From Kudoa neothunni (lineage: Eukaryota > Animalia > Cnidaria), in the NCBI GenBank assembly GCA_964304625.1, contig OZ199839.1:1487893-1551892 (forward strand): a stretch of 64,000 nucleotides of DNA, written 5' to 3'. Positions 5,527 to 63,877 of the stretch are shown one piece after another. The position numbers and the translations under genes are program-made. How positions within the stretch are numbered: the first letter of the stretch is position 1; each line of letters begins with the position of its first letter. The notes beneath the pieces are model-generated. The model saw only the letters and a list, made by a program, of their open reading frames with translations, was not told where the DNA came from and made no database searches.

Positions 5527-7702
5527 GGTACCAGAATCGGTGGTACCTTTGTACACATGCGCCAATAAATGTCGCGAATTAATAAAGAAACGACTTTAGA
5601 AGCGCGCAGCCGACCACAGGACACAATTATACACCAAATTCGTGCACCACGTGATTTGTTTTTTTAAGCTCGCGCGTTTATCATAGAGCAGGATTCGAAC
5701 TCGCTGCCTTAACACCTACTGAAGGTTGCTAATCACAGACACCGTCTGGGCACGATATTAATTTATATATGTCATTTTGTATAACTTTTTTGGGCATGCA
5801 GCAACTTTCTATTTTGATATAATAACGAATCATGATGTATAACTTTAAAAAAATGATCGAAAATTAACGCTTTCAAAAATATTTTCCTAATATATTATAT
5901 ATGTGGATTAAAACCATATGAGTTTTCGTCGGTTATAACAAACGTATTGCAAAAGTAATTATTTAAATTATCATATATAGAATATAGTTCATTAATTAAG
6001 TTTAAAAGTCAAGTCGTCCCAATTGTCTTAACATTTCCAAAAAGGGATCTTCCTTGTTTTTCAGATATTTTCGTTTGAAAATATATTTATAGAAATAACT
6101 AAGTCAAAATTTAATAATTGATCAATTATCTATATAAAAACCTTGAGTACAAGTATTTTCTCGTTCCATTAGACGGTAAAGAAAGTTTCAACTGGCACCA
6201 AGTTGATTCAATAGTGTTAGTGTGTGTGCCGTCTTTCGCAACAGCACTCACTATGGTTTACCACGCGATGTTGATAACCTAATGAGGACAACTTTTTATA
6301 TACTTTCGCTGCATCGGTATGTATAGTGGTACCTAAATACAGTTATATTGTTTTTATTTAAGATAAAAACCAGGTAAAATATATTTCTTGATCAATGGTA
6401 TTAGAGTTTGGTGGTTTCTTTTATTGACTGGGACGGCAAAAATACTGTGAGATCCTCGCTCTATACCACCAAATACCCATTGTCCTTCGATAGTTCGGTC
6501 GCGATTATACTTGCGTTTCCCGAATTTCGATTCGTCTATTTCGACGATTTTACCAGGACCTAACGAAATATTAATTATAAATAGAAAATATAATTACCTC
6601 CAATCTTTTGGGAATCCATTTGGAGAATTTCTCCACACAGGAACCTAAATTCTTTTTTCCAGTCCACAAGTGTGTTTAAGGAGGAAATCCTTAAATCGGA
6701 TATTATGAATTTATTCCTACATTCATGGATCCAATAATAAATAAGTAATAAGATCGTCTAAAACTATTATATATAATGTTGAGTAAATCAAAATACTTTA
6801 ATTTTTAACTTTGAAAATTCGAAAATAGAATTCTTACGAAGAGAAATAAATTTCCGACATTTTTTATTGTTACATCTCCAAGCAACTTTATGTATAATCA
6901 TTTTTGTTTCTTTCACCAGTTTCACTGTACCGGTTTTACATTTGGTACATACACCGGCTTTATCTTTTAACAAATTATAATTTGTTAAAAACTCTATAAG
7001 TCTGTTCTTGTTCGAGCACAACTTGTATATTTTGTTAGTGTTGAAACTTTTACTTAAATATATTATTCCGCGATATAATAAATTGGTTCTAGTAATTCCA
7101 TAATTTATATAGCATTGTTCTTAAGGTTTGAGCATTTAATTGGTTAAATAATTTGCTTTATTTCTCTTTTTACTATTCATTTACCTTTTTTGAATTAATT
7201 AACGAAGACATTGAAATGTTCTAGACTTTAAATTTGTTGCAGATGATGATATTAAAATAAGTTTAAATGCTTTTAATCAATTATTAACTTTATTATTAAT
7301 ATGAAGTAGCTTTAAATTTGAAATATTAATCATATTATTTCTGCCATGCCTTTATCAACTCATATATTAATAATCACATCAAATATAATTTTCGTAAAAT
7401 TATTAATCGGGGTCCAAATAGCATAAATAAGACGTAATATGTATTATAATAATTCTAAGTTGCAATAACCATGTTTTAGTTCTTAAAATTAATGATTTAT
7501 GATCGGTGATTAGAGTCTTTGAGGATTTTGACATCAGTATTGTTGACATGTAACCCTGAAAAAATTCCTCAAACTAAAATAGCCGTGAAAATATTGTTTG
7601 AAACATAAACGAATGCGCCAGCTACAGAATATCAGGCGATTTCTCGCTTTAGAGCGAACCTGGTTGGCGCACGCGCATAAGGGTACCACCGATTCTGATA
7701 TG
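5527..7702 (-). mobile_element. Merlin (IS1595/ISXO2-like) DNA transposon with ~40-bp TIRs and an intron-containing transposase (~6030-7120)
   Basis: Left TIR GGTACCAGAATCGGTGGTACCTTTGTACACATGCGCCAA at 5527 matches an inverted copy at ~7664-7702. Spliced protein has an N-terminal CxxC...CxxxxC zinc ribbon, IGGPGKIVEIDESKFGKRKYNR, QWVFGGIERG, PGTTIHTD, VNHS and HTNTIESTW. One frameshift at ~6243. No TSD seen. Confidence 0.92.
5686..5756 (-). repeat. Possible tRNA-derived SINE head inside the Merlin element
   Basis: Minus strand has an A-box-like GTGCCCAGACGG and a B-box AGTTCGAATCC at tRNA-like spacing. No cloverleaf could be folded. Confidence 0.35.
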
Positions 7703-8061: not shown

Positions 8062-10007
8062 ATGGAAATGCTGACGGAGTACGAATGGCCAACGGGATCT
8101 AATGAAAAATGGTTTGTTATGGAGCATGCTGGAAATTTTTTATCGATAAAATCTTTTAACCGCAAACACCGCGGTATTCGTGGAATTTGTTGATTTAGTT
8201 TTTATTTAAATAGAATTGAATCCAAGGACTTTGAGTGCCGAAGAAAAAGAGGAGCTTTTATCTAGCCGAATTATCAGCCAAATCGAAAGCACATTAAGTA
8301 ATTTATGTTGAAGCTCATTCGTTAATATCGATTTTTTTCTTGGATAGACCTACAAGCAGTCAAGTCAGATGACCTTCTCGACTTGATGGCTCAGAAATAT
8401 CCTCATAAATATTATGTAAAATTAAATCAAATTGTACTGAATGAGTAGCTGTGATGTAGCTTTATTGTCTTGTTCAAAACTTCAGTGGCACGTCTAATGA
8501 AAAAGATTTCGACCATTCAGAAGTATATTATTCAGGGCCGGTTATAGATTGAGGGTTTAATTAGGGAGACAGTAAAGTGGATAAATCATTCGCCATTCCT
8601 ACCTTTAAACCTTACGTAATAACCAAGGATGGATTCATATTTGATAGGTGTGTTTATTTGGTCTGTGGTGGTTTTTTGAAATCTCTCGATTCATAGAAAT
8701 AACTACTCGATCCATCAATTACAGTCCACCTCTAACAATTTTTATACATCCGCACCAAAGTCACCAGAAAACTCAATCCAATCAATGTTGCAAATGAAAC
8801 AAGTAAATTCATGTGTTATGTGTACTCTATGACAATAACTATTGGATTGGGTAGGAATTTTTACAAACTATAGATTCCATAGCAATCCCTCATAATGTTT
8901 CCATGACTAGCCTAAGTTGTTCCCCTGTCAAAAACACGACTGAATCTGTTCCTCAGAACAATGGAGTCGGTCGTAATTCTAAGAGTAATTTTCATAACAA
9001 TAATTATTTGTTGGCGATTAGAAGGCAGATTTGCCTTGGTAATAACTCATTTACTTTTAGAAAAAGTGCTCTGTGGCATTTGTAGTGCCGAATGTAGCGG
9101 CATTCGTATACCCAACCATAGGAATATTGGTTGTTCAAAATGTAAACGCTCATGTAGATAGAAAAGATTTTTAGCAGTTGTTTGAATTGTCACTTAGTTC
9201 ATATGAAATGTCTGGGAATATCGTTTCGTTCTGCTGACGTCATGAAGAAATACAATTGGAAGTGTGTGGAATGCAAAATATGCGAAAAATGTCTAAAGCC
9301 TGTTGGCGATGTAAATTTGCCTTTAGGTATGAGACGATTTCTCATATCTTGGTATTTTTATTACAGATGATATTTTGCGATCGTTGTGATAGATCATATC
9401 ACTCATTGTGTGTGGGTTTGAAGGAAATCCCTTTAGGTAACTCCATAGATGACTGTTCGTCTTATACACTTTTTTTTATTCGTTACAATTAGGCAGATGG
9501 ATATGCTCTCATTGTGGATTCTGTTCCTCGTGCACTAAAAGAAGACCCGGAAGCTGTGGATGGAGCACTGAAGTGGTTTCTTAAGAGATGGATTTTTTTT
9601 GATTTCACCTCGTAGGTTATGAAGATAGGTAATGATACCAAAAAAAATACAAGTCCATTGTTCAAACTGTTCCAAGTTAATTTTATTTTAATTTTGAAAT
9701 TAAACTCAACTTATTTTTCTAACCTAAAAAATTTTAGACTTTTCAATACTGGAAAATTCTGTCTGGTTTGTTTGGAAGTATTCCATGGTGTTTTGGAACA
9801 AAAAAATCCATCAAATAATAAAGCGTTGGTTAAATGCCCGTGTTGTAAGCATCTAATTCATAAAGGTACATTTATTGGGATGATTCCTTACAAAAGTTCA
9901 TTAATCTAGAATGCTACGATCGAAGTTTGAAAGGCTGTTTCGTTTGTTTGGGAGAGGTGCAACGTGATATCAACTTAAATGATTTGCTAAAAAATTCCAA
10001 CAACTAA
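8062..10007 (+). CDS. PHF10: PHD finger protein 10 (BAF45a/SAYP)-like, multi-exon
   Basis: N-terminus LTEYEWP...[14 protein letters not shown]...[18 protein letters not shown] matches the SAY domain. Tandem PHD fingers follow (CGIC...CSKCKRSFHMKC; [12 protein letters not shown]...[15 protein letters not shown]...WIC), then a further Cys-rich/PHD-like tail. Confidence 0.88.
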
Positions 10008-12965: not shown

Positions 12966-15193
12966 ATGACGGAAATGGTGGAAAATGAAAACCAGTTGGA
13001 TTGTAATGATCACAACCAAACTAATGCAAAAAATGAAATTATTGAAGAATGTGAAATTTTCAAGTCGGGTGTAAAGTATAATTGAATATCGTCATTACAC
13101 ATATACAAATATTTGTTACCTTTAAACATCATTTTTATATTTTTCATATCAATGATAGAGATATTCATGCGTGCAGCATGTTATATAACCAATATGGCGG
13201 CGAAATTTTTAAACTTTTCGATGAGTCTGGTAACAGTGTATTACACTGGGCTGCATTACGTGGCAATTTGAATATCATCACAATGGTCGTATCAGGAGGA
13301 AAAACTCACAATCCAAACGATCTAAATGAGACAAATGTTGTCAATTTGAACGTGATCGCAGAGAACGATTCCAAGTCTCATCCAATTCATTGGGCTTGCG
13401 ATGTTGGACATATGCATGTGGTTGAGTTGTTTTTGAGATTGGGAGTCGACATAAATGTGTTGGACTCGAAAGATTACACACCTCAAATGGTCGCCATTCA
13501 AAACAATCATATATTGTTGACAATTTTCCTCACATCTAAAGGAACAGATATCACTCATGTGGATAGTAGTGGTGACAATTGTTTGCATTGGTCGGCATAT
13601 ACGGGTATGTGCAAAAACTTTTTGTGTGTTACTGTATACAATCGCGTCATTGGTACTCTAAATTTCCTTAGGAAACTTGAGATTAGTTAAATACTTCCTT
13701 GAAGCGAATCAAATGGATCCTTCGTTAAAAGATAATTTCAATCAAGTAAATATACCTGTTAAATTGTATAAATAGATGATACTGTTAATTAAAATATATT
13801 TTTTGTAGAACTGTTTACATTTGGCTTGTTTGAGTGGAAATGTAGAATTGATTGAATTTCTAGTCGAAGAGGTATTCAATTAATGGTAGGGTTGATTTAA
13901 TTGATGTGAAGTTGGGGATGGATTACTTGGAGGGTGGAAACAACGGCCAAAATTGTGTAGATATTGTGAAAGATAAGAATCACGTAAAGGCTATCGCATA
14001 TTTCGAAAAACTACCTTCGAAATCTGTTCACAAAGCTTCCACAGATACTTCCTCCCTAAATATCAAACTGAGTGATGTTCATTCTGTGGAAGATTTTCTC
14101 AATTACACTAAAAACACCTATCTCGTTATGCCCCAAAGATTGTATTCTACTTCATTTATAACACACAAAAACTATGCTATATCTAATCTATTGTATAGAG
14201 TCTCATTGTGGAGCAGCTACAGTGGTGTTGAAGTAATTTCAATTGCATCGAAGTTGTCGTTTTGGTTGAATTGTGTCATTTCATTTTTCTATTTTTATGA
14301 TCTGGCTAGTGTATGGTGTCTCTCCCTAATATCTTTTTAAAAATATCATATTTAGTCATGGCGGTTCTCGTTCCCCTTTTACATCTTTTACACTTTCAAT
14401 TACATATTAATGATCGTATTCTTTATCAAGATGTTAAAAGTGAATAATGATATGTCCTATTTGAACAATATGGATTCATACGAAAAAACCATGGATCAAG
14501 TAATAGTTATTTTAGCTAAAGTTATTGTTACACATTTCATACAATTCTGGAAGTTATGTTGGATCATTTTACGGATTTATAATTTAGGTTTCAACCAAAA
14601 ATGACTGTACCATTCAGCTAATTAATACACCTCAACTTTGCCACAAATGTTGTGTAGTGCAACCTGAAGATTGCGAGCATTGTATAATTTGTGAAAAATG
14701 CGTCAATGAAATGATATTTCATGATTTCACTTTTGGTAAATGCATAACTAAAAACTCCATGTATGTGAATCTTCTTTTAATTATTGAGGAAAAATGGATG
14801 GAGATTGTAATTTTTTCTTAGGGGAATATACTTTGCTTTTGTTTTCCACAGAGCGATATTGTTTTTAACTATGACTACCGGCTACATTATTGATTGGCAC
14901 CGCTGGTATCACATTTACCATTATGTTTTTCTTGTCTACTTGATTGTTTGTGCAACTTCATACACTTACACTCTTTTGACTGCAGTAATATATTTCTTTA
15001 TATATGATGTAACACCGCTAATTGATGCATTAAGGTTGTTCTAGTAATTGGTAACAGTTTTGTCAATATTGTAGTACCCAATTTAGAAAAAGGTGAAAGC
15101 ATTGGTGGTTTAAAAAAAGGTTCAATGAAAAGGCGAGGAATCAAAATTTTCCTCAAAAGAGATTTAATATCTGCATACAAATCATTGTTATAA
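12966..15193 (+). CDS. Ankyrin-repeat DHHC-family protein (ZDHHC13/17/Akr1-like), paralog 1; catalytic motif degenerate (IFHD)
   Basis: Ankyrin repeats (VLHWAALRGN, PIHWACDVGH, CLHWSAYTGN, CLHLACLSGN), hydrophobic TM segments and the Cys-rich domain CHKC-x9-HCIICEKCVNEMIFHDFTFGKC. Spliced frame is open through to TAA at 15191. Confidence 0.9.
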
Positions 15194-15485
15194 GATTTTT
15201 CAAATTTCAATTGAGTTTGAATAATTTTTTTTTAATTATATTTGGTCGACTTGTTAAAACAGGCCCAACAAACATCTGTATCTGAGTGGAGCGTTCATCT
15301 CAAAGCGACTCAGAAATACATAATCATTTAATTTTAGAAGTTATTATGTATAAAATGTATTGATTGTGGGAATCAATAGAAAAACGTTAAAATGAACCTC
15401 CAACTATTTGCGCGCAAAATTTTGCGATAAGTTTAATGCGAATTACATAAAATATTTCTCGATGAAGTTGCAAGTTCCAATAATA

Positions 15486-18158
15486 CATGGGCTAATCAAA
15501 AAGTATCGAGATTTATTAAATAAAAAGATATATACACAAATATAATGAATTTTTTTAATCTCCCACAACATACTCACCATCCGCATCAGTACATTTTTCC
15601 AGTGTTGCTTGCACTGGAGGAAGCATTATTAAAAATCATTTTTTTTCATTATCTTGAGCTGCTCTGTCGCATTCTCTTTTATTTCCTCAATGGAATGGAA
15701 TCTCCTTCCTTGACGTTGGAATTTAATTTTTGGGAGCCGCATGGAGCAAGATCTGGTGAGTATGGAGGATTCTATAGCTGGGTGAAGTTCACCTTGGCTA
15801 AAACTTTTGGATTTTTAATGACTTGTATGAGGGGAAATTATCGTGATGAAGTATCCAACGTCCACAGGAATTCATGTGGGGTCGTTTACGACGAATGGCA
15901 TCCGTAAATTCCGCAAAACTCTGAGAAAATACTCACTTGTGACTGTAAAAGCTTCAGGTGTGTATTCATAATAAATTTTCCCCGGATTTCAAAAAAAACT
16001 GAATAGTACTTTCATTTTACTCCGAACGTTGGTGGACTCTCTTTGGTCTGGGCGACGATGATGTTTTCCAAATGGAAGATTGAACTTTTGTTTCGGGATC
16101 ATAACCATAAACCCAAGTTTCATCGCCTGTTACGATAAAATTCATGAAGTTATCGTCTGTTGATGAGCATTGAAGTAAATATTGAAGTTATAAATCGCAA
16201 TTCTTTATGTTCGGACGTGAGCATTCGGGGGACAAATTTGGCGGCGGCTCTTCTCATACGAAGATCATCAGTCAAAATAGCTTGACATGATCCAAAAGGT
16301 ATTCCAATATCATTCGCAATTTTCCTAATAGTAAGTATACGTTCAAAATTGATCATATCCTTATTATCATTAATTTTTTCATGATTTCTGCTAGTTAAAG
16401 GTGGACCAGAACTATCCAAACTACCAATCGAACTCCTATTTTCTTTTAATCGGTTATGCCACTCAAAGCCTCTACTTCTACTCATGGGAATGCCTAAAAA
16501 TGCTTTTTGAATCATTTCATAAATTTCGGTACAGCTTATCTCCATTTTGACGCAGAATTTAATACAAATTCTCTGCTAGTAGTTTTCTGACATTCTCGCA
16601 AGCAACGTCGTCCCATTTCTCCACTTAAACAACTACGGTCGAACCTGGATATTGCGCAATTTTTCTAGAATGGGAAAACATTACGCAGTACAAGTTATTA
16701 ATGCAAGCGTTTATGCACAAAAAATAATAATTTATTGGGGTTTAAGATAAAAAATAACTGGTAATTTCAGTTTATTTGCACATACTTTCGATTATTTCAG
16801 GTATGAACTCAAAACTATGTTTTGACAATAATGCTGTTGAGTTTTCTAACAAAAGTTTTATGATTAAATTAATTGATTGTTTGAGTTCCGCAGTTGACAC
16901 AATCGCTTCCTCTTTTAGAAAAGTTGGATCGAAATTTCCTTGAAATTTATCAGATGCATAAGCTTCAGGTAAAGCTATTGACTCCTCATGTATTTTCCCT
17001 CTTCTTCAATATTGTTGGTTTCATCGTATTTTTACCTAAAAGTTAAAGTCTATAAACAATTAAATAATGTGACTAAATTTTCATTATCTGTTAATTAATC
17101 TTTAATTTGGTATATTGTAGTACCAGAGTACAGTGTTCAAAAAATCTAGATTTTCTAAATCAGTTTTGAATTATATTCGATGATACGTTTTCCCATACAT
17201 GATTTAAAGTTTTAGTAAAACTAAAATTATATACTTAATTAAATTTGAATTATCCATATTTATTACGTTGCACTTTTCATATCGTAGTGCAATTTTTTGA
17301 AATTTTACCAAAAACCCATCATAGTTTGATTATTCACATTATTGGATTCATCATGAAATTTTTTTATAATTAATTCCAAATCTATTTTTAAATTCTACGA
17401 ACCAATCGTTACTATCGGTGAATTTGTCAATACCTATGGGTTTAACGATATTTTTTGTCTTTTCAACCATTAAGTAAGCAGGAACAACCTTTTTTTCAAT
17501 TCGCATTTTAGTTATTCATGTATAGAATAAATTAACTAACTCCGTGTACTCGTCTTCTTTTATTTTGTTTGGAGCCGAAATAATAGAATTAATAATATCA
17601 TGCTGAGAAGCTATAATTCTATCAATTGTAGAATGCCTTGCAAATATATTATATAGCTTGAGAAGTTTAAAAGTCATTCCTTTTTCTCTTTTGAGTGATT
17701 TAATCGAATTGTAATATTCGATTATTTCAATTTTTTAAGCCATTGTTCGTTGATTACTTACCATTTTTGTTTCGCAGAATTCAAAAAGGAGATTAATTGA
17801 GAATTAAACTGAACAAAATGTTACGCCGTAGCGAGAGTTGAGTTATAACACACTAACTTAAATTTATACTTCTTTAATCAAATCTTTTTATCTTCGATTG
17901 CTCAGTAAACATCAATTTAAATAGTGTAAAAGCAAAGTTTGAGTAAAAAATTTAAAATATCCTTTATATTTCTATGAATTTGTGAAATTACACAGTATCT
18001 AGGTTCGACTGTAGCCGCTAGATTTTATTATTGATTTGTTAAATTTGTTTTCAAAAATATGCGAATACATATCTTTTACAACATTCTATTTTTTTAATTA
18101 CATCTTGGTCATACGAGGAGATATTTAAAAATTCTCGATACTTTTTGATTTTCCCAGG
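15486..18158 (-). mobile_element. Mariner transposon with defective transposase (~15560-16592)
   Basis: TIR CATGGGCTAATCAAAAAGTATCGAGA with inverted copy at 18133-18158 and TA TSD. Motifs QRICIKFCVK, AAKFVPRML, VTGDETWVYGYDPETK, LHHDN and PYSPDLAPCG (third catalytic Asp changed to Gly). Contains stops and frameshifts. Confidence 0.93.
16636..18011 (-). mobile_element. Tigger/pogo-like transposon remnant nested in the mariner 5' region
   Basis: TIRs CGGTCGAACCTGGATATTGCGCAATTT and CAGTCGAACCTAGATACTGTGTAATTT with TA TSDs. Minus strand encodes a degraded psq/CENP-B HTH (KIEIIEYY...STIDRII) and a QTEITSYF-like C-terminus. Confidence 0.8.
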
Positions 18159-18743
18159 TATGATGGGTGAAGAATCAAAAAATGAATAAAATTATTGTAG
18201 CTGTCTCCATACTTTCCGTGTTTTAAATCGAACGAATAAATTTTTTATGGGCTTAAATCCATAATGAAAATAACATAGCCGAAAATTCATAGACTCGATT
18301 GAGTGTATTGAGAAAAGCCAAAAGGGTATTTCATCAACATATTGCTGAAACTATCTAAAACATTTCAAGTTTTAATGTTTCTGTTCTTCAAAATGAAAAC
18401 AAATTAACCTTTAGAAGTATTTTGGAGCATACATACGATTAATTATCTTTTTTGTGTTTATTGACAAAATTTTTAATGCCGCAGGAAATTTTCAGGTTTT
18501 CTGAACATTAAAACAGCTTAATTGAGTATAATTACAAAATATTCCAGAAACTTGCAACTTGATGGAGAAATACTGTATTAATCCTTATGGCTCATTACTG
18601 GATCTACAATCAATTTGTTTTCAACCTTAAAAAGGCTCAAATTTTGTTGCAATTCTACGTGAGTGAATACCAAAATATTTTTATCATTTTGTTCCATTAA
18701 AAAAATCATTATTTTTGTTTGTTTAAAGCTTTGTTGGTATTAA

Positions 18744-19723
18744 CTTTCTAATGATTTTGGGGTGTATTACCCAAACATTATTAAAACCAATAATAACTTA
18801 TCTTTCATGTTCTTTTCACGAGGTTAAACTCAGGATATTTTAATAGATTAATTTGAAATTTCATTTTGTCAGATCTGATTAAAAAATAGATTATATAGGA
18901 TCAATAAAAAAATATGTTCAAGCGATTTTTAGGGTGTAATACACCCCGGTTTTTTATTGATTGGAAACGATATTGCTTATGCCTTGGTATGAAAAAGTTT
19001 AGGAGAATATTATCGAGTAGATTTTCATTAGGTCTGAAGTTCGCAATTTTAATTTTCGCAAGTTCCGTGTTGTTAATGGCGTGCAGCTCTAAAGACTACA
19101 ATAGTGAAAACCAATCATCTGGTAATGATTCGGATGATTTTGTTGTTGGATCTGTGATAAATTCAGACGAATTCATCGAAATCCACTCCTCTGCCGGATC
19201 ATTGAAAAATAATAATAATGTTGTGTGGAATTTAAATCAAGAACTTCTTTTGAAAACATTATGCATAGTCATCCAGAACCAACAAATTACTATCGTCAAC
19301 GGATTAAATGTATTTATGATGATTTGTTATTTTCTATAACCTAAATATTTATTGTGAAATAATGAATTATTCCAATTTATTTGTAAAAACATATTATAAG
19401 GAGCATTAGTAGGAGATTGATGGAGTCGAATCAACATATACCTAGTAATTCTGATCTCAATGGTTATCCATAAAGATAGACAAGAACGACTTTGTGTATT
19501 GTTTAGTGTAGATGATGGTAGAAAAATATATCGTCACATTTTATCGCTACGAAAATCTAGGTGGGTGCCAAGGGCCTTGTATTTCGACGATGCTAGGATG
19601 CTAGACCCAAGAGAAGAGGCGAACTAGCAATAAATTTTGTTCCGTCAGTGGGGTGTAACTATTGTTGAGCGGTTGGTAGCGTTAAGAGGATGATTTCCTC
19701 TCAAGCAATATTTGCCTCCAAAG
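18744..19723 (+). mobile_element. piggyBac transposon remnant (5' part), cut by a hAT insertion
   Basis: TTAA-flanked end at 18740-18744, then an acidic N-terminal stretch, ALYFDD (canonical LRFDD) and VTIVERLVALRG*FPLKQYLPPK (canonical VTIDEQLVAFRGRCPFRQYIPSK). Confidence 0.8.
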
Positions 19724-20891
19724 CAGCGGTTCTTAACCTTTATTCCTTGCGGATCCGTAATGTGTTCAATTGACTTTACACGGTTCCCACCTATTTCAAT
19801 GCATGTTCAAACGTACCTTAAATAGTTGAACCCTTTCATTCACATTGTCTATCTTAGTGGACATATGAAAAAGATCCTAAATTATTTATTTTTAAAAGAA
19901 TAAAATTCTAATTGTATATAATTTTAATACTAGTTTAGTATAACAAGTTCTCGATGCAAAAGAAAAATTTGGGAACGAGAGGGTTAATTTAAGTTACTCA
20001 TCTAAATCCCCAATTTTATTGAAATATTTATTATGTAAATTAAATACGAAGTAGTTTTGTTTGTAAATCATAAATTTTTAATCATTTGGAAATGAATTAT
20101 TTTTAATACTAAAACAAAAAATTGACAACGATTAAATCATTCTCAGTGATTTTTGTTGGAAAATATTAGAACACTAACCGAGTATAAACAATGACGCGCA
20201 ACATATTCAAAGAAATATATTTATGAAATTTTTTAAATCGTCATATACACATATTTAAATATTAAAAGTAAAATCCATAAAAAAATTTCAACGAGAAAAA
20301 TTCTCTTATAATAATAGGAATATTTTGCTATACATCGTCTTTTTTGATTAGTGATGGTGTTTATTAAAATAGAGTGAAAAAGTATTATCATATAATAGAA
20401 TTCGAATTTAATACAAAACGCATATTTCTTATATATAATAATAAACACTATTGAATATTTAATGATATTTTTGTCAACAAGACTACGAAAATTTGACAAT
20501 GCTTTCGAAACAACCAACAAACATATAAACGATGTCGTAATTTTGTTTTTATGGTATCAAGTGAGGAAAATCTAGATCCGCAAAAATAGGTTGCTGTAAA
20601 AGGAGTAATTATTCTGATTGCGTAACCTTCATCATTAATAAACACCTGTTTAAATTTTGTTTATCGAATAACTTGTTTGTATGGATTTTTTTTGTCAAAA
20701 TAAATTTAACACAAAATTTTATGACAAATATAAAATATTAATAAAAGATAATAACACAAAGATATATTAGAAACTTTAATAATTACATTAACACTAAAAA
20801 ATACCTAATTACAAGGAATGTGTGTTGATAAGATAGGATTCAAATTCGATTGAAATCACCCACGGACAGACCTCAGGTTAAGAACCGCATG
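19724..20891 (-). mobile_element. hAT (Buster/Charlie-like) deletion derivative
   Basis: TIR CAGCGGTTCTTAACCT with inverted AGGTTAAGAACCGCATG. ORF 20448-20645 (AIRIITPFTATYFCGSRFSSLDTIKTKLRHRL) matches the hAT C-terminal dimerisation region. No clear 8-bp TSD. Confidence 0.82.
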
Positions 20892-21673
20892 TTTAATGAC
20901 TTTAATATAGAATTCCTTTATTCCTCAAGGCAGCCCTGTTAGATCCAACTAGTACTTTGTAGATGGGATAAATATGTGCTTAATCGGATGTTTTTATAAT
21001 AAAACAAAAACAATCGCACGCTATTAGTGATCTTAATGTTATTTCCAAACAAATCAAAAATTATATGAAAAATTATTGGAAAGGTAAAGTTGGAATCAAA
21101 AAATACACCGTATCGATGTCTCGCTTAGATCATGCGCGCACATGGTTACACAATAGCGAAAACCGGATAATTTAGCAAATCAGATATGTTAAAATAATTT
21201 AATAATATTTACAACATTTTAACATACTGTATTAAAGTAATTTCAACTATCCTTGGTAGTCTCTATATGGAACATATATATCACGACACTTAACAGATAA
21301 CGGTAGTTGCCGACAATAAAGAATTAACCTTTCTACAATCTAAAAAATTGTATATGATAACATATATTTCTTAAAAAGCATTTTTTGTGGTATTTGGATA
21401 ATTAATATAATAACAATGAGGCTGCATCTTCAAATATTAAAAATGAAGAGAGAGCTTCGAAAATTCGTTAGGAGGATTAATGTTCTCTGGGAAAAGTGAG
21501 AAAATAAATAGAAAATTCATAAAATACCTCTAAAAATAATAGATTGGCCTCGTTTATTCCACTAGGGGAAACATCACTATAAACAGGTGGCCTGCTCCGA
21601 AAGAGAAAAAATTACACATGAAATAATACTTAATTTATTAAGAGACTTAAAGTCGATAACAAACGAAAAGAAA

Positions 21674-23895
21674 ATGTCAGAAAAGCTTGAGGAGGCTGAG
21701 ATTTCACTGATTTCAGAAGAAAATAGCCGTGCAACCTCAAGAAGTGAATTTATTGACGAATGTGAAATTTTCAAGTCTGGTATAAAGTAATCGTCAAAAT
21801 CAACTAATACTAATTATTATACTTGAAAATCATTTTCAAATTTTCTATATCAATAATAGAGATATCCATGTGTGTAGTATGCTATATAATCAACATGGTG
21901 AAGATATTTTTAAAAAATTTGATGAGTTTGGCAATGGCGTGCTGCATTGGGCTGCATTACGTGGCAACTTGAATATAATCACAATGGTCGTATCAGGAGG
22001 AAAAACTCACAATCCAAACGATCTAAATGAGACAAATGTTGTCAATTTGAACGTGATCGCAGAGAACGATTCCAAGTCTCATCCAATTCATTGGGCTTGC
22101 GATGTTGGACATATGCATGTGGTTGAGTTGTTTTTGAGATTGGGAGTCGACATAAATGTGTTGGACTCGAAAGATTACACACCTCAAATGATTGCCATCC
22201 AGAATAATCATATATTGTTGACAATTTTCCTCACATCTAAAGGTACAGATATCAATCATGTGGATAGTAGTGGTGACAATTGTTTGCATTGGTCGGCCTA
22301 TATGGGTATGTGAAAAATTTGTGTGTGTGTTGTTTGCAATCACCTCACTAACATTCCACTAATTGTCAGGGAATTTGAAATTAGTCAAATACTTCCTTGA
22401 ATCGAATCACATGAATCCTTCGTTAAAAGATAATTTCAATCAAGTAAACAAACTGATTAAATTCTATTCGTAGATAATAGTTTAAATAAAAATTTATTCT
22501 TTGTAGAACTGTTTACATTTGGCTTGTTTGAGTGGAAATGTAGAATTGATTGAATTTCTAGTTGAAGAGGTATTCAATTAATGGTAGGATAAATTTAATT
22601 AATGTGAAGATGAGGATGGACTATTTGGAATGTGGAAACAATGGAAAAAATTGTTTCGATATAGTGAAAGAAAAGAACCACTTGAAGGCCATTGAATTTT
22701 TCAAAAAATTGTCTCCAACATTTTCCGAACAAGAACACACTGCTACTCCCATGGAAAACATGTCACTTAGTGATGTTCAGTCAGTGAAAGATTTTATTAT
22801 TTACACACACAATATCTATCACAAAATGCCTCCAAAATTGTAATTTACCTCATTTATAACACATCAAAGTTATTCGCTATATCTGATTTGTCGTATAGAG
22901 TTTCTTTATGGGGTAGTTACAACAACATTGAAGTGATGTCAATGGCATCAAGATCATTTTTTTGGTTGAATTGTGTGATTGTCCTCTTCGGCTTCGCTGA
23001 ACAGTTTTATGTATGGTTTCTATTCTAAAAAATTTTTTCAATGCATCATATCTAGATGTCGTCTTTTACTTACTCATATTTCATCTTTTTCCTTTTCAAT
23101 TACTTGTTGATGATTATATTTTTTATCAAATTATCAAAAGTGAATAATGATATATCCTGCTTGAACAATATGGATTCATACAAAAAAACCATGGATCAGG
23201 TAATAATTACTTAAAAAAATTAATGTTACACATTTAATTTAATTGTAATAGTTATAATTGATTATTTGATGAATTTAAAATTTAGATTTCAACCAAAAAT
23301 GACTGTAGTATTCAGCTAATTAATACACCTAAACTCTGTCACAAATGCTGTGTAGTACAACCTGAAGATTGTGAACACTGTATTATTTGTGGGAAATGCG
23401 TAAATGAAGTGATGTTTCATGATTTCACTTTTGGTAAATGCATAACTAAAAACTCCATGTATATGAATCGTCTTTTAATTGTTGGGGAAAATGAACGGAG
23501 ATTGTAATTCTTGCTTAGGGGGATATACTTTGCTTTTGTTTTCCACAGATCTGTATTGTTTTCAATCTTAGCCGTTAGCTACATATATCATTCGGGATTG
23601 TGGAACAGATTTTTCCGCTTTGTTTTTGTAGGCTACTTAATCGTATGTGCGATCTCATTTACTTACACATTTTTGGCAACAGTAATTTTTTGTTTTTATT
23701 AGTTTAAATGTCACTGATTATTTAAATTAGACGGTCTTGTTGATTGGTGACAGTTTCGTCAATATGGTAGCACCCAGGCTAGTAAAACGTGAAAATTTCG
23801 GTTCCCTCCCAAAAAAAGGTTCCATGAAGGAAAGGGGATTAAAGGTTTTCCTTAGAAGAGACTTGGTTACTACATACAAATCATTATTTTCTTAG
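21674..23895 (+). CDS. Ankyrin-repeat DHHC-family protein, paralog 2; catalytic motif degenerate (MFHD)
   Basis: Same exon-intron layout as 12966-15193. Cys-rich domain CHKC-x9-HCIICGKCVNEVMFHDFTFGKC. Ends in TAG at 23893-23895. Confidence 0.9.
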
Positions 23896-28102: not shown

Positions 28103-29316
28103 TTAACGATTGTTGGGGAAATTAATAAATGCAGTAAATACTGGAATCTGTTTTTCATCATTCCAAATAAGGTAGAGAAATGGTCGATTAACTTCGAAAA
28201 TGACAGGTCTAGCAGGCATACAATACGTGTTCATTACAACTGCAGTTGCGACAGCTGCCACGGTTTCTTCTTCATCAACTATGACTTTTGCAGATTGAAG
28301 TATTGCGGACACAGAAATATCTTCCTCAGTAATTCCACTGAAATCGCAGCGACTAGGATCGAAAATTATACCTAGATTCTTCCCTCCGTTAGACGTTTGG
28401 TCAGAGAGAAAATTTTTAAAGTTTAAATCATATGCAACTGAAAATTTAGGTAAAGAAAGTCTCACGGACTCATAATGAGATTTTTCTAGTTCAGAAATTG
28501 TTTCCAAGATCTAAAAATAATTAGAAAATAAAATATAATACCACAAAAATTCACGATTTCAGATTGAAAGAGTTGTCTGTATGAATCTCTTATGGGCGGT
28601 AAAATCAAAATGGCAGCATACTCTTTACTGTTGAACGGCAGTTTAATGGAGTGAATATCTAGTATGTCATCATAAAAATATTTGAATTCTTGTTTTTGTC
28701 GCATATACTGCACTTTAACGGTAGACTTATTGTTTAGATAAAATTCACCCAAAGTTGTTTTAGTTTTGTCAAAAGGATACAACCATTTGGCCTTGAATAA
28801 TGCGGTATTTATTAGAATCACCGAAGTAAGATGTATGATGCAATCAGCATTTTTTATCATGTCATTGATGAGATGATTGGTTGCTTCAGATATCCATTGA
28901 TCGATGAGGGTGACACTGGCTTCAACATCACGAAAATTTACATGTTTTATTGTGGTATCAAATAATCGGGTAACATTATCAATGTAATCTTTTTTGATAT
29001 GGCCAGAAGTAAACACACCATTATTAAGATCCAATAGCGAGTCACTATGTCCCTTAATTTGTTTGAAGGTAGCAATATTTGAATATTTTGATTTTGGTTG
29101 GTCAAGTTGTGCGAGCAACTTGTAATTAACTCTGGTAACTTCATACAGAGCGCTGTAGGTTTGTGCTTTCGAGCCAAGTTGTAGTATAGTTAATAGTTGA
29201 TAAAGACTTGGAGATGAAAATACCATATTTTGAGACCAATTATTATTCTCTCCAGCATAGCAAAGGAATTCAAATGAAAGTTTAACGATGACATTGGCAA
29301 TAGCTTCATTATCCAT
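28103..29316 (-). CDS. Serpin, 2 exons, no obvious signal peptide
   Basis: Motifs NMVFSSPSLY, INTALFKAKWLYPFD, VKVQYM, LPKF, hinge/RCL VDEEETVAAVATAVVMNTYCM and FEVNRPFLYLI. One GT-AG intron at ~28511-28554 joins the two ORFs. Confidence 0.96.
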
Positions 29317-46016: not shown

Positions 46017-46706
46017 TTATGAAATATCTTTTATAAAATCAGGAATGATGGCATTGCCGATGGTTTCCACTTCGGCCAACGAATTTAGAATGTTTTGAAA
46101 CTTTTGAATATCTTCATGGGAAACTGATTCATCGCCGATTATTCGTTTGACCAATCTTTCTCTCTTTGGTAGTAGAAACGATGCGGCTGCAACAGCCTTA
46201 CGTATGATCCAAATGTGTTTTTTCGAAATAGTCAAATCATAGCAATCACGAATAATTTGGCTTGAACTCATGTAGTGGTAAGAGTTGTTCAAAAGTCTAG
46301 TCAACCGTAATTAAAATAACGATTTTCAAACAGCATTGGGACACCTTTCGAATACGAGTCTAATGAATTCATAAGCGCGATGAAGAACAACAAAATTCCG
46401 TGTTCCGCTATCGAATACCAGCTTAGGATCGCTCAACATACCACTCGTCTTTTCGAACTCAATCATATCGACCACACTGATGTAATGCTGTTTGTTGGAT
46501 GTGGTGAGGAACGCACGTAATATAGCAAGTTTATTGTCAATGTCCAATCGCGCGAATCCAAATATTCCTCCAAATGCACCCACCACATCTCTGAAGCTCT
46601 CATAGATGTCACAATATAATTCAAGTGGTACAAGATTTTTGTGGGGTGATTCCAAAAATAAGGCAACCTTTGGTTCTAACTGTTCGAGATAATTTAACGA
46701 ACACAT
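46017..46706 (-). CDS. CPTP: GLTP-fold lipid transfer protein, CPTP/GLTPD1-like, 2 exons
   Basis: Motifs FGFARLDIDNKL, MIEFE, SGTRNFVVLHRAYEF and CYDLTISKKHIWIIRKAV...LPKR. One intron at ~46298-46344. Confidence 0.85.
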
Positions 46707-49324: not shown

Positions 49325-52300
49325 GGCAGTGGCTATTACCACGGGAATCAATTTCTCTGCAATTATTATCTCTATTAAATAACTAATTTCATAATACTAT
49401 TATTTATATTTTTCTCCACCTAAATTATTGAATTAGGTAACAATTGAGAATATCTTTTTTTACATATTTATATTGTTTATTTTATTGATTGTTTTCCATA
49501 ATTAAATGAAAAATTTATTAATCTTAATTTAATACATGATCAAAATTGTATTATATCATTTTCTGTCAATAATAATATTAAAGTTGAAGAATTGTGTGTG
49601 TTATTGTTTAAGTCTGACATTACTATAGAAGCGCGCGCTTCCACATGATATATTCAACCTCGTGTTATTTAATTTATTTTCAATCTTTATAATGTTTAAA
49701 TTATGTGATTTATCGTATTCTATTAATAAATTATGAACTTAAAGATAATATATGCTCACTATATTTCACAGATATGATGTGAATTTTCCGCTTTATATTT
49801 CAATATAGACAAGAAATTTGAGAAAAACTAATCATAATTAGGTCATTTTTCAGAAATTAGATGAATATAACACGATGAACAATGGCTATCCTAGTCAAAT
49901 AAATAATGAGAGATCTAAGAAAATTTAGTTTTTTTGTTGTATCCAATAGTGGTTAAAGCGTATCCCCTTGGTCTCCCAACAGACTTCACTCGAGAGGGAA
50001 TTTTTAAGGCTAAAATAATTTAAAAAAAGAAAGGAAATGAAAGTACCATCAAGCTCGATCATATTTAAAGTAGGTGCTAATTGATCTTTAGATAAAACAA
50101 TTTGGAGCTCGGGAGCAATTTTCATTTGAAATATTATTAACAATAATATTCTCGATAATCTCCTCACCTTGCGGAACAATATTATTACCAACACCCTCAA
50201 CAATTATTTGAGAATTAAAAATATTCTCAATAACATCTATTTTTTGTAAGTTAGATACGAGTAAAATATTCAAGTTAAGCGTCATATACCTCTTCCTTCA
50301 GAGATATCTTCATCTTCGGCTATAGCCTCAGAGTATTCAATGGTGCGATTTCCTAAAAATAAATCAAGAAAAATTAAGTTTTCTTAAAATACCTAATTGA
50401 TTTTTTTTTATTAATTTGATGTCGTGGTTCTTGATTATTTTTTCTATTGTGTTGAATAGTGATAGGCAACTATCATATAACTCCCCACAATATTCAGCGG
50501 ACAAAGCTGCTAGCTTATTTGTGTAAATCACAGAGTTTTTTAAATGTTTTCCATAAGAATTTAAAAATTCCTTTTGGTTTTATTGTAATACTCTCTTTTG
50601 GTGTTATATTTATAGTTTCCATTTCCAAGAATTGGCTCATGTAATCTTTTGACCATCTAGGGTGGTATCGATTTGAACCGAACATTGGAAGCAGGTTAAA
50701 CGCTCTCTTTTTAAAAATATGACTACATGGAAGGAGATACGATCTGTAAATATAACAATTGCATCTTATGGATGTAGTTAAACTATCTGTATTCGTGTTT
50801 TCGTCAAAATTTTGAATTTGTGGATTATATTGAAGGCAAATGGATTTAAATGATTAAAATACGCGTTTTAGAACTTCACTTGAGGTATCAACATTAATTG
50901 GGTTCAGTAATATTTTGGTTATATTGTATTTTCTTTCTATTCTCACTGATTTGAGAGCGTCAAAGAAATAGCGGAAAAAATCATGGAGATTCGAAAATTT
51001 CTTTATTGTTTGTTTTAGTTGGCCGTTAATGACTTCTAATCTATTATTGGTCAAGTTTTCATAGAAACGATATGCTACACTTAATCCTATGACCCATTCA
51101 TCAGCGATTGGTTCCCAATTGGATTTAAAAATAGTTAATAAACTTATCGTTGCTTTGTTGAAAAAGGTTATTGCATAACTTATCGAATTCATGTTTATTT
51201 TTCGAATAGATAATTTTTATTAAGAGTTTCAAGCAGTTGGTCCCTTTTCTCTCGTGTGATACCGTATTTCGACATAGTTATTTCACGTCTGAAACTTTGA
51301 GAAACATGAAATATACAGATCATTAGATTGGGAGTTTGGCAATAATTCTTTCAAACACTTCCTTAGAGTGTGGTGCTTGTCAGTAATGGTCGTTCGGACA
51401 TTTTGAGTCATGTTCAGCATCATTTTTATTAGTTGAGAAATATACCATTTAATTGACTCCGCCGTTTCATCGTACAAGATGCAGCCGCTAGTTATGTGGG
51501 CTTCACCAACCGAGTCTTCTGCAACAGACATACAATGGCGCACTAATAAACTAATAAAACAACGAAATAGAGAAAACCTCCTAAGATTACCGTGAGACTA
51601 GCAGTTTATAGATTGCATCAAACATGGATAACTGGGAAGAAATTAATTGTGTTGAATATCTGCTTATCCATAAAAAAGATTCCACAAACATTTTTATTAT
51701 CACCTAATAAAACGCTCACTATGCAGTATCAGTATTAGTGATTTTTTAAAATTTCCACAACTAAAGTAATGTTATCAGATCCGACTTTTGAGATTTTTTT
51801 TAATGTTGTGAATAGCTTTCAAAGGTATATTCTTGCCTGAATCGCCATTTAACTTGGCTTGTATGAGTTTTTTGTTCGTTTCTGAGAGAAAGAAGCTCTG
51901 ACAAATAGCCATCACTTTGGTTTAATTTCCTCTGACTGGGTAAGTTTTTCATAGATCAACGGATCATTTGGATAGTTAGGGGTAGTGTTAGAAGATCTAA
52001 TCTCCAGGAAATTTCCATCTACACTTACTCTTAATGTAACTTTACATGGGCAATTTCTCTTAAGGGAAATTTTCTTATGCTTTCGCCTTTAACTCTATTT
52101 CGATAATGGGCTCCAAAGTAACATACATAAGTTATTTCGTAATACATTGGCGTGTTTTTAATATTTCGATTAACCCGGTTTTACACTGAGTCCAATTCTT
52201 CTTGAATCTTTAGATTCACAAAATGACTTTTCTCATACTCTTTAATATAGACTTTTAAACTTTTAAAAGTTTAAAATTTCATTCCAACATGAAAATTGTC

Positions 52301-52661
52301 CGAATTCGAATCTCTCATTGTAGTTCAACCAAATTCGTAAAACACGTTAGAGTTATGTTTACACTGGCATGGCTCAGAGCAATAATTTAGAAAATTATTA
52401 ATATTTATAATTAATTTAACGTTAATATTGTTTTAGTCTATTAAATTGGCTAACATTTATGTTACTAGCCGTCTATTTTCCATAAATTTACAACCATCTC
52501 AAATTTCTTTATTTTTCATAATTTAGTAGAGAAAAATATAAATAATAGTAATGTGAAATTAGTTATTTAATAGAGATAATAATTGCAGAGACATTGATTC
52601 CCGTGGTAAGAGCATGTGCCGAAGGTGGGGATTACACGGATCCATGGTAATAGCCACTGCC
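49325..52661 (-). mobile_element. Mutator-like (MULE) transposon with ~100-bp TIRs and a fragmented MULE+SWIM transposase (~50290-52310)
   Basis: TIR GGCAGTGGCTATTACC...ATTTCTCTGCAATTATTATCTCTATTAAATAACTAATTTC at 49325-49427 matches an inverted copy at 52518-52661. Internal TTITDKHHTLRKCLKELLP and a SWIM finger CNCYIYRSYLLPCSHIF. Many stops and frameshifts; TSD not evident. Confidence 0.88.
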
Positions 52662-61500: not shown

Positions 61501-63495
61501 ATAAATACACTGTAAAATCATCCATTTTCAGCATTTATAATTATAAACAACTTTTTCTTATATTTATTTATTTATTTCTTACTTCCTTACTTAATTAATT
61601 AATTAATAAATAAATGAATGACGAATTGATCACAAAGAGAGATAACCAAACAGTTAGGATAAATATTCTTTCCTTTTTTTTATTATCATAAATGTTTACG
61701 GGAGATTTCCTCAAAGTATACACAATGCAAGGAGGTACGTAATCATAAAAATTAACATATTAAAATTCATAAAAATAATTTTCCAAGTTAAACTAACAAT
61801 GAAATCAATGAGATAATTGTTATTTACAAAATTCAGGGCATATGATTGTTCTTATTTCTCGAATTGTAGTCGGTTATTGCAGAACCAATAATTTCTTTTT
61901 ACACATAAAGGAAACTTAGAACTTGTTCCATGTTTATATTTATTTAATTTCTGTTGATTCATTAAGGATGTTTTAAGTTTTAAATTTGTTCCGACAAAAT
62001 ATTTTAATACTATATTATGAGAAAAAATTTTTGAAAATTTGCATAATTGATGGCTAGAATATTTAACAAGAATATAAACCCTTTATTATACCAATTAAGA
62101 CGCATGTAAATGCCAATACCGAACGATAATATTAATATTTATTTAAAGTGGCGCAATCTTGACAATGGATTTTGAGATACACATTATATCTCTTTCCCTG
62201 TATTTTCCCCAACTGTTATTGCAGTATACAAAATTGAACCATTAATTATTAATATTACATTATTAAGCCTAATATTTTTTTTAATAATTTTCATTAGGCA
62301 TTTCAGGCTTATAATTTCCTATTTATTCAGCAATGAAATAATGTACTAGGAGTTCCAAGTTAGCTATAGTTTTTTTATGAATTATTTCATTTTAATAGAA
62401 AGCTGTAATATCTTATTGAGTTAATTTTAAAATTAAACTTCTAATTACTATTTGAAGGAAAAGTAATTCAAAGATATTAGTTATCAATTTTAGCAATTAT
62501 TAGAGAAAACCATTGATTTTAGGTCGTTGATGGATATTTTTATGAATGCCATATTTTTATTAAAGCCATTCTGCTTCGTTAATATTATATACATTAGAAT
62601 GACTTTAATATTATTTAAATTGTTTGCAGTCGGATTAATAACAAATAATCCCAGTCTACCTTATGTGCATAAGCGTTTGCATAACGAACTAAAAAAATAA
62701 ATAAGATTTTTTCATAATCGGCATATGAGACATATTCATAAGGGAAAAAAATCTTATCCATAATTTCATTAATCAGAATAGAAAATAAAATATGAAATAG
62801 GTCAACCTCAAAACTGGTGTGTCTTGTCCTATTGGACAACTTGAAAGGTTAAATAAATTTATAAATACCTTGATACATGATAAAATAACATTTAATACGA
62901 AATATAATAATATTAAATTCGAATTGTATGATTTTGTAGAAAATAATAATTATTTTCTATAGGTGAGGGTACTCCGGCAGAAGCGTCAATTACCAAAGGC
63001 CCCAACTCCAAGGCCAATCCATAGCTTATGATTCCCAACGTGCTATTCACTAACAAAACCTAAGAAAATTATTTATTTACTTGTCATAAAATTTTAATTA
63101 ATTATTCGTACTACTAGTTTTTCTTATATAACATGTTATGACATCCTATTCGTCTCGTTACTTATATGTATTTTTTGCATGATCTAAGCTGTTGCAATGT
63201 TGTAATAAGTGTAAGCTCTAAATATCACTCAAACATCTGTTTTCAGACTACTTAGATTATATTTTGAGCATATGATGAATCACAAAAATTATCAAAAATT
63301 TTAATCGATGAAGATTTTTATTTCCATTTCACTTTCAGTATTAAATTTAAGATTAAAAATGGCGAAAGAATATAAATTCAAAAAAACTTATTTGCTTCGA
63401 AAATAAAAAGGAAATTGACTGTTTTATTTAAATTATGAAAACTAACATGGTTATCATTAAAGAACGAATCTTTTTTTTGTTTACAAGGTCAAACC

Positions 63496-63741
63496 CCTGG
63501 CGCAAATTGTTAGGTTGTGAAGTTCGGGCCGGTTAGACCTTCTCCATTTATGCTGTAGGCACCGCAGCGTCATATTAAGACGACTTAGGTTTATCCAATT
63601 GTGTGGGATTTTAACTCACTAGCCATGCTCGTTCGGAGCAACCACCCTCCCAACCATACCCTGAATTAATACAGAATTGGTCTAAGAAAGTCGCTTGAAT
63701 GCAGGCGTCGGCTCTACAGATACCCCTACTCCTATTGGGTT
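63496..63741. repeat. Dispersed ~250-bp repeat, copy 2 (inverted relative to 32011-32266)
   Basis: By-eye alignment to the reverse complement of 32011-32266. Confidence 0.88.
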
Positions 63742-63877
63742 TTATTTCATTCCTCTACTCCGGCGTTTATGAGCACCAAATATCTACCTTTCCTTTTTCA
63801 AGTATGATCACGATAAATTGTAGATCCTTGCGATTACAACAACCTTCCTACCGAATTTCGGATTTAGAGATCAGGAA

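Follow-up and report, generated by a model that had tools for sequence, protein, structure and literature searches.

A tandem pair of ankyrin-DHHC genes (paralogue 1 and paralogue 2) is located in a 64,000-nucleotide (nt) stretch of DNA from the cnidarian fish parasite Kudoa neothunni (assembly GCA_964304625.1, contig OZ199839.1, positions 1,487,893 to 1,551,892 of the forward strand). This whole stretch is referred to as the window, and coordinates are those of the window unless another contig is named. Both genes very probably encode selected, catalytically dead pseudoenzymes. Each joins ankyrin repeats and a DHHC domain in one gene, which places them by descent in the ankyrin-DHHC subfamily. 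The features of the two genes are as follows (residue numbers are those of human DHHC20, hDHHC20).

12966-15193, + strand: paralogue 1, putative ankyrin-DHHC pseudo-palmitoyltransferase gene (10 exons, 557 amino acids)
12966-13075, 13159-13604, 13672-13745, 13809-13871 and 13912-14141, + strand: exons 1-5 of paralogue 1
14199-14310, 14356-14499, 14588-14760, 14822-14984 and 15035-15193, + strand: exons 6-10 of paralogue 1
13159-14010, + strand: ankyrin-repeat domain of paralogue 1 (exons 2-5, about six repeats; Pfam Ank_2, E 6.2e-15 for exon 2)
13277-13489, + strand: 213-nt tract of exon 2 (coordinates in paralogue 1), identical in both copies
14199-14499, + strand: exons 6-7 of paralogue 1, two hydrophobic segments (predicted transmembrane segments 1-2)
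14588-14760, + strand: exon 8 of paralogue 1 (173 nt), DHHC cysteine-rich domain
14639, 14648, 14678, 14681, 14690, 14699, 14720 and 14741, + strand: codons of the zinc ligands in exon 8 of paralogue 1
14660-14686, + strand: former acyl-CoA (coenzyme A) phosphate-binding loop of paralogue 1 (K135 to Q, R138 to D, H140 to E, S143 to I)
14714-14725, + strand: IFHD in place of DHHC in paralogue 1, followed by F-T where P-W is expected
14822-14984, + strand: exon 9 of paralogue 1 (predicted transmembrane segments 3-4)
15059-15070, + strand: FVNI at the TTxE position of paralogue 1, gapless from the shared intron 9
21674-23895, + strand: paralogue 2 (10 exons, 560 amino acids, layout as in paralogue 1)
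21674-21786, 21860-22305, 22370-22443, 22507-22569 and 22610-22839, + strand: exons 1-5 of paralogue 2
22899-23010, 23056-23199, 23286-23458, 23519-23681 and 23731-23895, + strand: exons 6-10 of paralogue 2
21860-22710, + strand: ankyrin-repeat domain of paralogue 2
23286-23458, + strand: exon 8 of paralogue 2, with the same zinc ligands and acidic loop as paralogue 1
23412-23423, + strand: MFHD in place of DHHC in paralogue 2

The spliced frames of both copies are intact, as had been supposed from the sequence: each has ten exons separated by GT-AG introns of 40-88 nt with identical phases, and translation and alignment gave zero internal stops. The copies are 72% identical in amino acids and 78% in DNA. 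The ankyrin repeats of paralogue 1 are collinear with those of an arthropod gene and contain a conserved insert of about 15-20 residues after repeat 1. Exons 6, 7 and 9 show hydropathy peaks of 1.6-2.2 that correspond to about four hydrophobic segments, and they are collinear with the arthropod exons. Searches, comparisons and folding used the individual exons of the spliced models. The Pfam DHHC profile (PF01529), suggested as a check, does match exon 8 alone (E 2.6e-5 for paralogue 1, profile positions 3-46 of 133; E 7.1e-5 for paralogue 2), with both scores below the gathering cut-off. The ESM Atlas returned generic DHHC (0.91) and ankyrin clusters. The AlphaFold single-exon models, made from alignments that were too shallow, are of low confidence (pLDDT 40 for exon 2 and 54 for exon 8). 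A fold search with the exon-8 model gave weak matches only, with ZCCHC4 (PDB 6UCA, E 0.15) ahead of DHHC15 and DHHC20.

Translation places IFHD and MFHD exactly where the original prediction had read them. Exon 8 aligns without gaps with zebrafish DHHC15 and human DHHC20 and ZDHHC9, for which structures have been solved (best E 5.9e-5), and with the exons of arthropod ankyrin-DHHC genes, so the I/M-F-H-D tetrapeptide lies on D-H-H-C. Residues D153, H154, C156, P157 and W158 are replaced by I or M, F, D, F and T, respectively. The predicted retention of all eight zinc ligands holds in both copies (C128, C131, H141, C142, C145, C148, H155 and C162). When exon 8 is compared with an active arthropod enzyme, the zinc ligands are identical at 8/8 positions, against 5/49 of the other positions (Fisher p 7.8e-7). 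The TTxE motif is missing, as also predicted; TTNE of the arthropod counterpart is replaced by FVNI in paralogue 1 and by FVNM in exon 10 of paralogue 2, in a gapless register from the shared intron. The DPG position, encoded by exons 6-7, is degenerate (DMS in paralogue 1 and DIS in paralogue 2). Because the exon structure is shared with the arthropod genes, the register of the DHHC and TTxE positions is fixed without reliance on the profile. No DHHC-like motif, nor a whole exon carrying a true one, was found in any plus-strand frame of either locus, introns included, and an alternative DHHC exon was rejected on this ground.

The acyl-CoA pocket has changed as well. Residues K135, H140, R126 and S143 of hDHHC20 bind the CoA phosphates, and mutation of K135 or H140 abolishes activity (PMC8851515). 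Besides the loop substitutions listed above, R126 is replaced by Q/K in the copies. The net charge of the loop is +4 in the arthropod enzyme versus -3 in both copies, and the canonical DHHC genes of the same genome retain Lys or Arg at position 135. Both copies have thus probably lost acyl-CoA binding too. Measured against an active DHHC S-acyltransferase, the zinc domain is present, whereas the catalytic Asp, His and Cys, the CoA contacts, DPG and TTxE are absent. Judged by these residues, neither gene encodes an active DHHC enzyme; the structure appears to have been kept and the chemistry discarded.

The substitution pattern between the copies indicates purifying selection. By the Nei-Gojobori method, applied by exon, the synonymous rate (dS) is 0.60 and the non-synonymous rate (dN) 0.165, with dN/dS of 0.27 (bootstrap 95% 0.21-0.35); a value near 1 would have indicated pseudogenes. 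In exon 8, which is 89% identical between the copies, dN/dS is 0.10 and the differences are mostly synonymous, as noted earlier (11 synonymous, 6 non-synonymous; Fisher p 1.6e-5). Exons 2-4 were also compared with L014, a contig from another sample (SRR33529766) that carries exons 1-5 of a relative and in which exons 2-4 have the same lengths; dN/dS was about 0.08-0.10, at a nearly saturated dS. Conservation is highest in the ankyrin exons (93% between the copies, 61% to L014), whereas amino acid identity in the transmembrane exons 6, 7 and 9 is 52-65%. The identical 213-nt tract of exon 2 (proportion of synonymous differences, pS, 0.02 inside versus 0.47 outside) is probably the product of recent gene conversion, which would homogenise the ankyrin domain while the transmembrane exons diverge. 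The contig covering this tract has about double depth in sequencing run X1. The selection signal is independent of the tract, because outside it the proportion of non-synonymous differences is 0.06 against the pS of 0.47. A second identical run, of 44 nt, spans F-H-D in both copies. Sequencing error was rejected as the source of the altered motif, which is common to two copies at dS 0.6. False duplication was rejected because of the 78% DNA identity and the occurrence of the letters of both copies in short-read contigs. Both genes thus combine, as far as sequence can tell, the loss of catalytic residues with purifying selection, the combination expected of a pseudoenzyme.

The closest gene structures were found in arthropod-like ankyrin-DHHC genes (L102, L105, L107 and kin), which came from a pattern scan of metagenome contigs and which we take to be orthologues of Patsas (Drosophila CG6618). 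Seven of the nine Kudoa introns (2, 4, 5, 6, 7, 8 and 9) match the arthropod positions and phases, with an exact register at introns 2, 4, 7 and 8 and an approximate one at 5, 6 and 9; all seven are present in L102. Intron 4 is 40-42 nt long and ends in AAG in both copies and the relative (13872-13911, 22570-22609 and L014 943-984), and it occupies the same position in the arthropod genes. The DHHC exon is 173 nt long in Kudoa and arthropod genes alike. These shared introns and the 173-nt exon, together with the collinear repeats, support descent from the arthropod (Patsas-type) ankyrin-DHHC lineage rather than from HIP14/ZDHHC17, and ZDHHC17 orthology as the default reading was rejected for the same reason. 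As an indirect indication, the 60 top-scoring PDB matches of L105 (down to 112 bits) do not include the ZDHHC17 ankyrin chain. Patsas is a second invertebrate ankyrin palmitoyltransferase that is more distant from Hip14 and does not use the Hip14 interaction motif (PMC9374236). Orthology with ZDHHC13, the product of a gnathostome duplication of a HIP14-like gene, does not apply either, since the genome is very probably myxozoan and ZDHHC13 is restricted to jawed vertebrates (bioRxiv 10.64898/2026.04.20.719575).

The genome comprises 40.26 Mb in 4 contigs, with about 30% guanine-cytosine (GC) content and short introns; the published Kudoa neothunni assembly is 40.2 Mb in three chromosomes, with 30.41% GC and an intron length of 49 (PMC12239612). 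Four types of canonical non-ankyrin DHHC genes were found, at C3:8.61, C2:2.74, C1:8.72 and C2:6.60 Mb (with a copy at C2:6.84). The two copies of the last type (C2:6.599 and 6.839 Mb) are 240 kb apart and 98.9% identical, differ mostly by single-base indels, and represent either a recent duplication or an unpurged haplotype with errors. No ankyrin matches occur near the canonical DHHC genes, no 12-mer coding for DH[HY]C was found up to 46 kb from any Ank_2 match in the genome, further genome scans gave no additional cysteine-rich domain, and no HIP14-like gene was detected in the genome. The search for a separate canonical ZDHHC17, proposed earlier, therefore found no active ankyrin-DHHC gene elsewhere, and the four non-ankyrin types instead. 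The two dead genes are apparently the only ankyrin-DHHC genes detected, in a low-coverage assembly in which some intron-split genes could be missed and other ankyrin loci were checked by coordinates.

A membrane-anchored scaffold that presents clients to active palmitoyltransferases is the role that we somewhat favour. Tandem duplication of a gene with the active site already lost, or later homogenisation of the loss, would have produced the pair. The ankyrin repeats would capture client proteins, and the zinc-stabilised cysteine-rich domain and helices would hold the fold and present the clients to one of the four active non-ankyrin DHHC types. The scaffold model fits well, since only non-ankyrin palmitoyltransferases remain as partners. 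ZDHHC13 has been proposed as a pseudoenzyme scaffold recruiting a non-ankyrin palmitoyltransferase, and its Cys-to-Ser form still raises HTT acylation in ZDHHC17-knockout cells (bioRxiv 10.64898/2026.04.20.719575); a non-ankyrin partner is indicated because this form works without ZDHHC17. Natural ZDHHC13 forms lacking the cysteine occur in ray-finned fish (DHHS) and chicken (DQHS) (bioRxiv 10.64898/2026.04.20.719575), so the earlier statement that natural variants retain it was wrong. In Akr1, the ankyrin and DHHC functions complement in trans, and the ankyrins bind and sequester G-beta-gamma independently of S-acylation (PMC3234281). In the original prediction the genes were described as folded, selected pseudoenzymes; selection and catalytic loss are borne out by dN/dS, the zinc ligands and the loss of the CoA contacts and TTxE, while folding and expression, like a Golgi location and partnership with active palmitoyltransferases, are inferred.

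Several points weigh against the scaffold reading. The ZDHHC13 precedent is a preprint with overexpression, and intron-split DHHC genes could have been overlooked by the genome searches. The two copies probably owe some of their resemblance to conversion. In relatives, the searches did not recover the DHHC exon: a word search with exon 8 gave zero candidates; poly-ankyrin proteins dominated a profile search with exon 2, in which one protein (P0001) was the sole close relative among matches of at least 246 bits; a word search with the exon-2 alignment and a 558-residue ankyrin match brought up mainly ankyrin proteins from abalone, and the 120 matches listed included no DHHC protein; and a related-locus search in metagenomes gave no match. 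No literature on DHHC proteins in Myxozoa was found. The four runs that contain the window come from one sample and none is recorded as RNA; the X1 contigs span the gene, introns included, and both copies are represented in their letters. Three host RNA runs (X5-X7), labelled as the same species, yielded 0-3 poor reads and no transcript, and since they contain essentially no parasite they are no test of expression. The genome paper likewise had too few parasite RNA reads (PMC12239612).

The main rival to the scaffold, which we consider rather unlikely, is a palmitoylation-independent adaptor whose ankyrins bind, for example, G-beta-gamma or trafficking cargo and whose former enzyme domain is a zinc-stabilised membrane anchor. 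The Akr1 precedent and the higher conservation of the ankyrin exons than of the transmembrane exons agree with it, but the constraint on the cysteine-rich exon equals that on the ankyrins and exceeds what a passive anchor needs, although fold stability alone could suffice. It is improbable that Cys-to-Asp, the acidic loop and two extra cysteines present in both copies form a new metal or cation site for transport or chemistry. Both copies share the new residues exactly, whereas nearby codons show synonymous differences, and the charge is reversed, not merely neutralised; against this, the comparison covers two copies of one species, the 44-nt run over F-H-D could be conversion, no catalytic base remains, and Mg2+ transport by HIP14-like proteins is contested. 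Equally doubtful is the wider proposal that a duplicated Patsas-type protein was retooled for a new sensing, transport or catalytic job, its acyl-CoA pocket becoming an acidic, cysteine-enriched site for a new metal or cationic ligand in an animal without an active ankyrin palmitoyltransferase.

A residual non-canonical acyltransferase is very unlikely. Cys-to-Arg Swf1 and Pfa4 of yeast are cited as partly active (PMC8107437), but such activity needs acyl-CoA binding, and Asp, His, Cys, Trp158, K135, H140, TTxE and DPG are all lost. Since acyl-CoA binding has probably gone, Swf1/Pfa4-type activity and new acyl-CoA chemistry are both weakened; the earlier suggestion that Cys-to-Asp could support a new chemistry is disfavoured for acyl-CoA, the CoA-phosphate pocket having turned acidic. 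Decaying pseudogenes or an assembly artefact, which the lack of RNA and the low-coverage assembly would allow, are hardly credible, since both 10-exon frames are intact at dS 0.6 and dN/dS is far below 1, L014 contains an intact fragment of an orthologue, and short-read contigs show the letters of both copies.

Other features of the window are listed below.

About 1300-2830, - strand: phosphoglucose isomerase
6357-7120, - strand: Merlin/ISXO2-like transposase fragments (by eye)
8800-9900, + strand: PHD-finger protein
About 15440-16600, - strand: broken mariner-like transposase remnant between the paralogues (by eye; no Pfam match)
15477-15522 and 18122-18167: imperfect inverted repeats accompanying the mariner-like remnant
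18908-19336, + strand: open frame of 143 amino acids between the paralogues (no Pfam match)
28103-29316, - strand: serpin in two frames (intron or frameshift near 28490)
32007-32290 and 63472-63745: inverted dispersed repeats (78% identical)
38731-39222, + strand: SNF2-family ATPase
46326-46706, - strand: glycolipid transfer protein
49332-49428 and 52518-52613: inverted dispersed repeats (94% identical)

Elsewhere in the genome (C2:9.455 and 9.474 Mb), a DEAD-box helicase (DDX56-like by eye) is present twice, 19 kb apart and 99% identical, possibly as an assembly duplicate.

The non-catalytic job of ankyrin-DHHC proteins has so far been argued from mutants (Akr1) and from ZDHHC13, which keeps most of its active site and has an active sister. 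The Kudoa genes provide a natural, fully disarmed version in another lineage, maintained by selection in a parasite whose strongly reduced genome seemingly lacks an active ankyrin palmitoyltransferase. They are evidence of repeated origins of pseudo-palmitoyltransferases and a caution that genes of this sort are missed or mislabelled by Pfam-style annotation; a DHHC family scan of the genome left both of them out. The organism is intractable and the data come from one genome; heterologous expression makes the scaffold model directly testable.

Among known systems, the arthropod L102/L105/L107 genes share with the Kudoa genes the collinear ankyrins, seven intron positions and phases, the 173-nt exon, the zinc ligands and the layout, whereas they keep DHHC, DPG, TTNE and the basic CoA loop, all four of which are lost in Kudoa, where the gene is also tandemly duplicated. 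ZDHHC17/HIP14 and Akr1 likewise combine ankyrins with a DHHC cysteine-rich domain embedded among transmembrane segments, but they are active enzymes, and ZDHHC17 has six predicted transmembrane segments (PMC8059564) versus about four hydrophobic segments in Kudoa. The zinc module of ZCCHC4 resembles that of exon 8 outside a palmitoyltransferase; ZCCHC4 is, however, a soluble S-adenosylhomocysteine-binding protein, and its match is non-significant and comes from a low-confidence 57-residue model. ZDHHC13/HIP14L is an ankyrin-DHHC protein with a defective site (DQHC, DQHS or DHHS), an altered TTxE and a proposed scaffold role. It has one or two changed motif residues and an active ZDHHC17 beside it, whereas the Kudoa genes have lost 3/4 motif residues and the CoA pocket in a genome in which no active ankyrin-DHHC gene was found, and the origins are independent. 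The Kudoa pair is therefore an independent and more extreme case of a kind already known from ZDHHC13, probably resembling that proposed pseudoenzyme in function without being orthologous to it.

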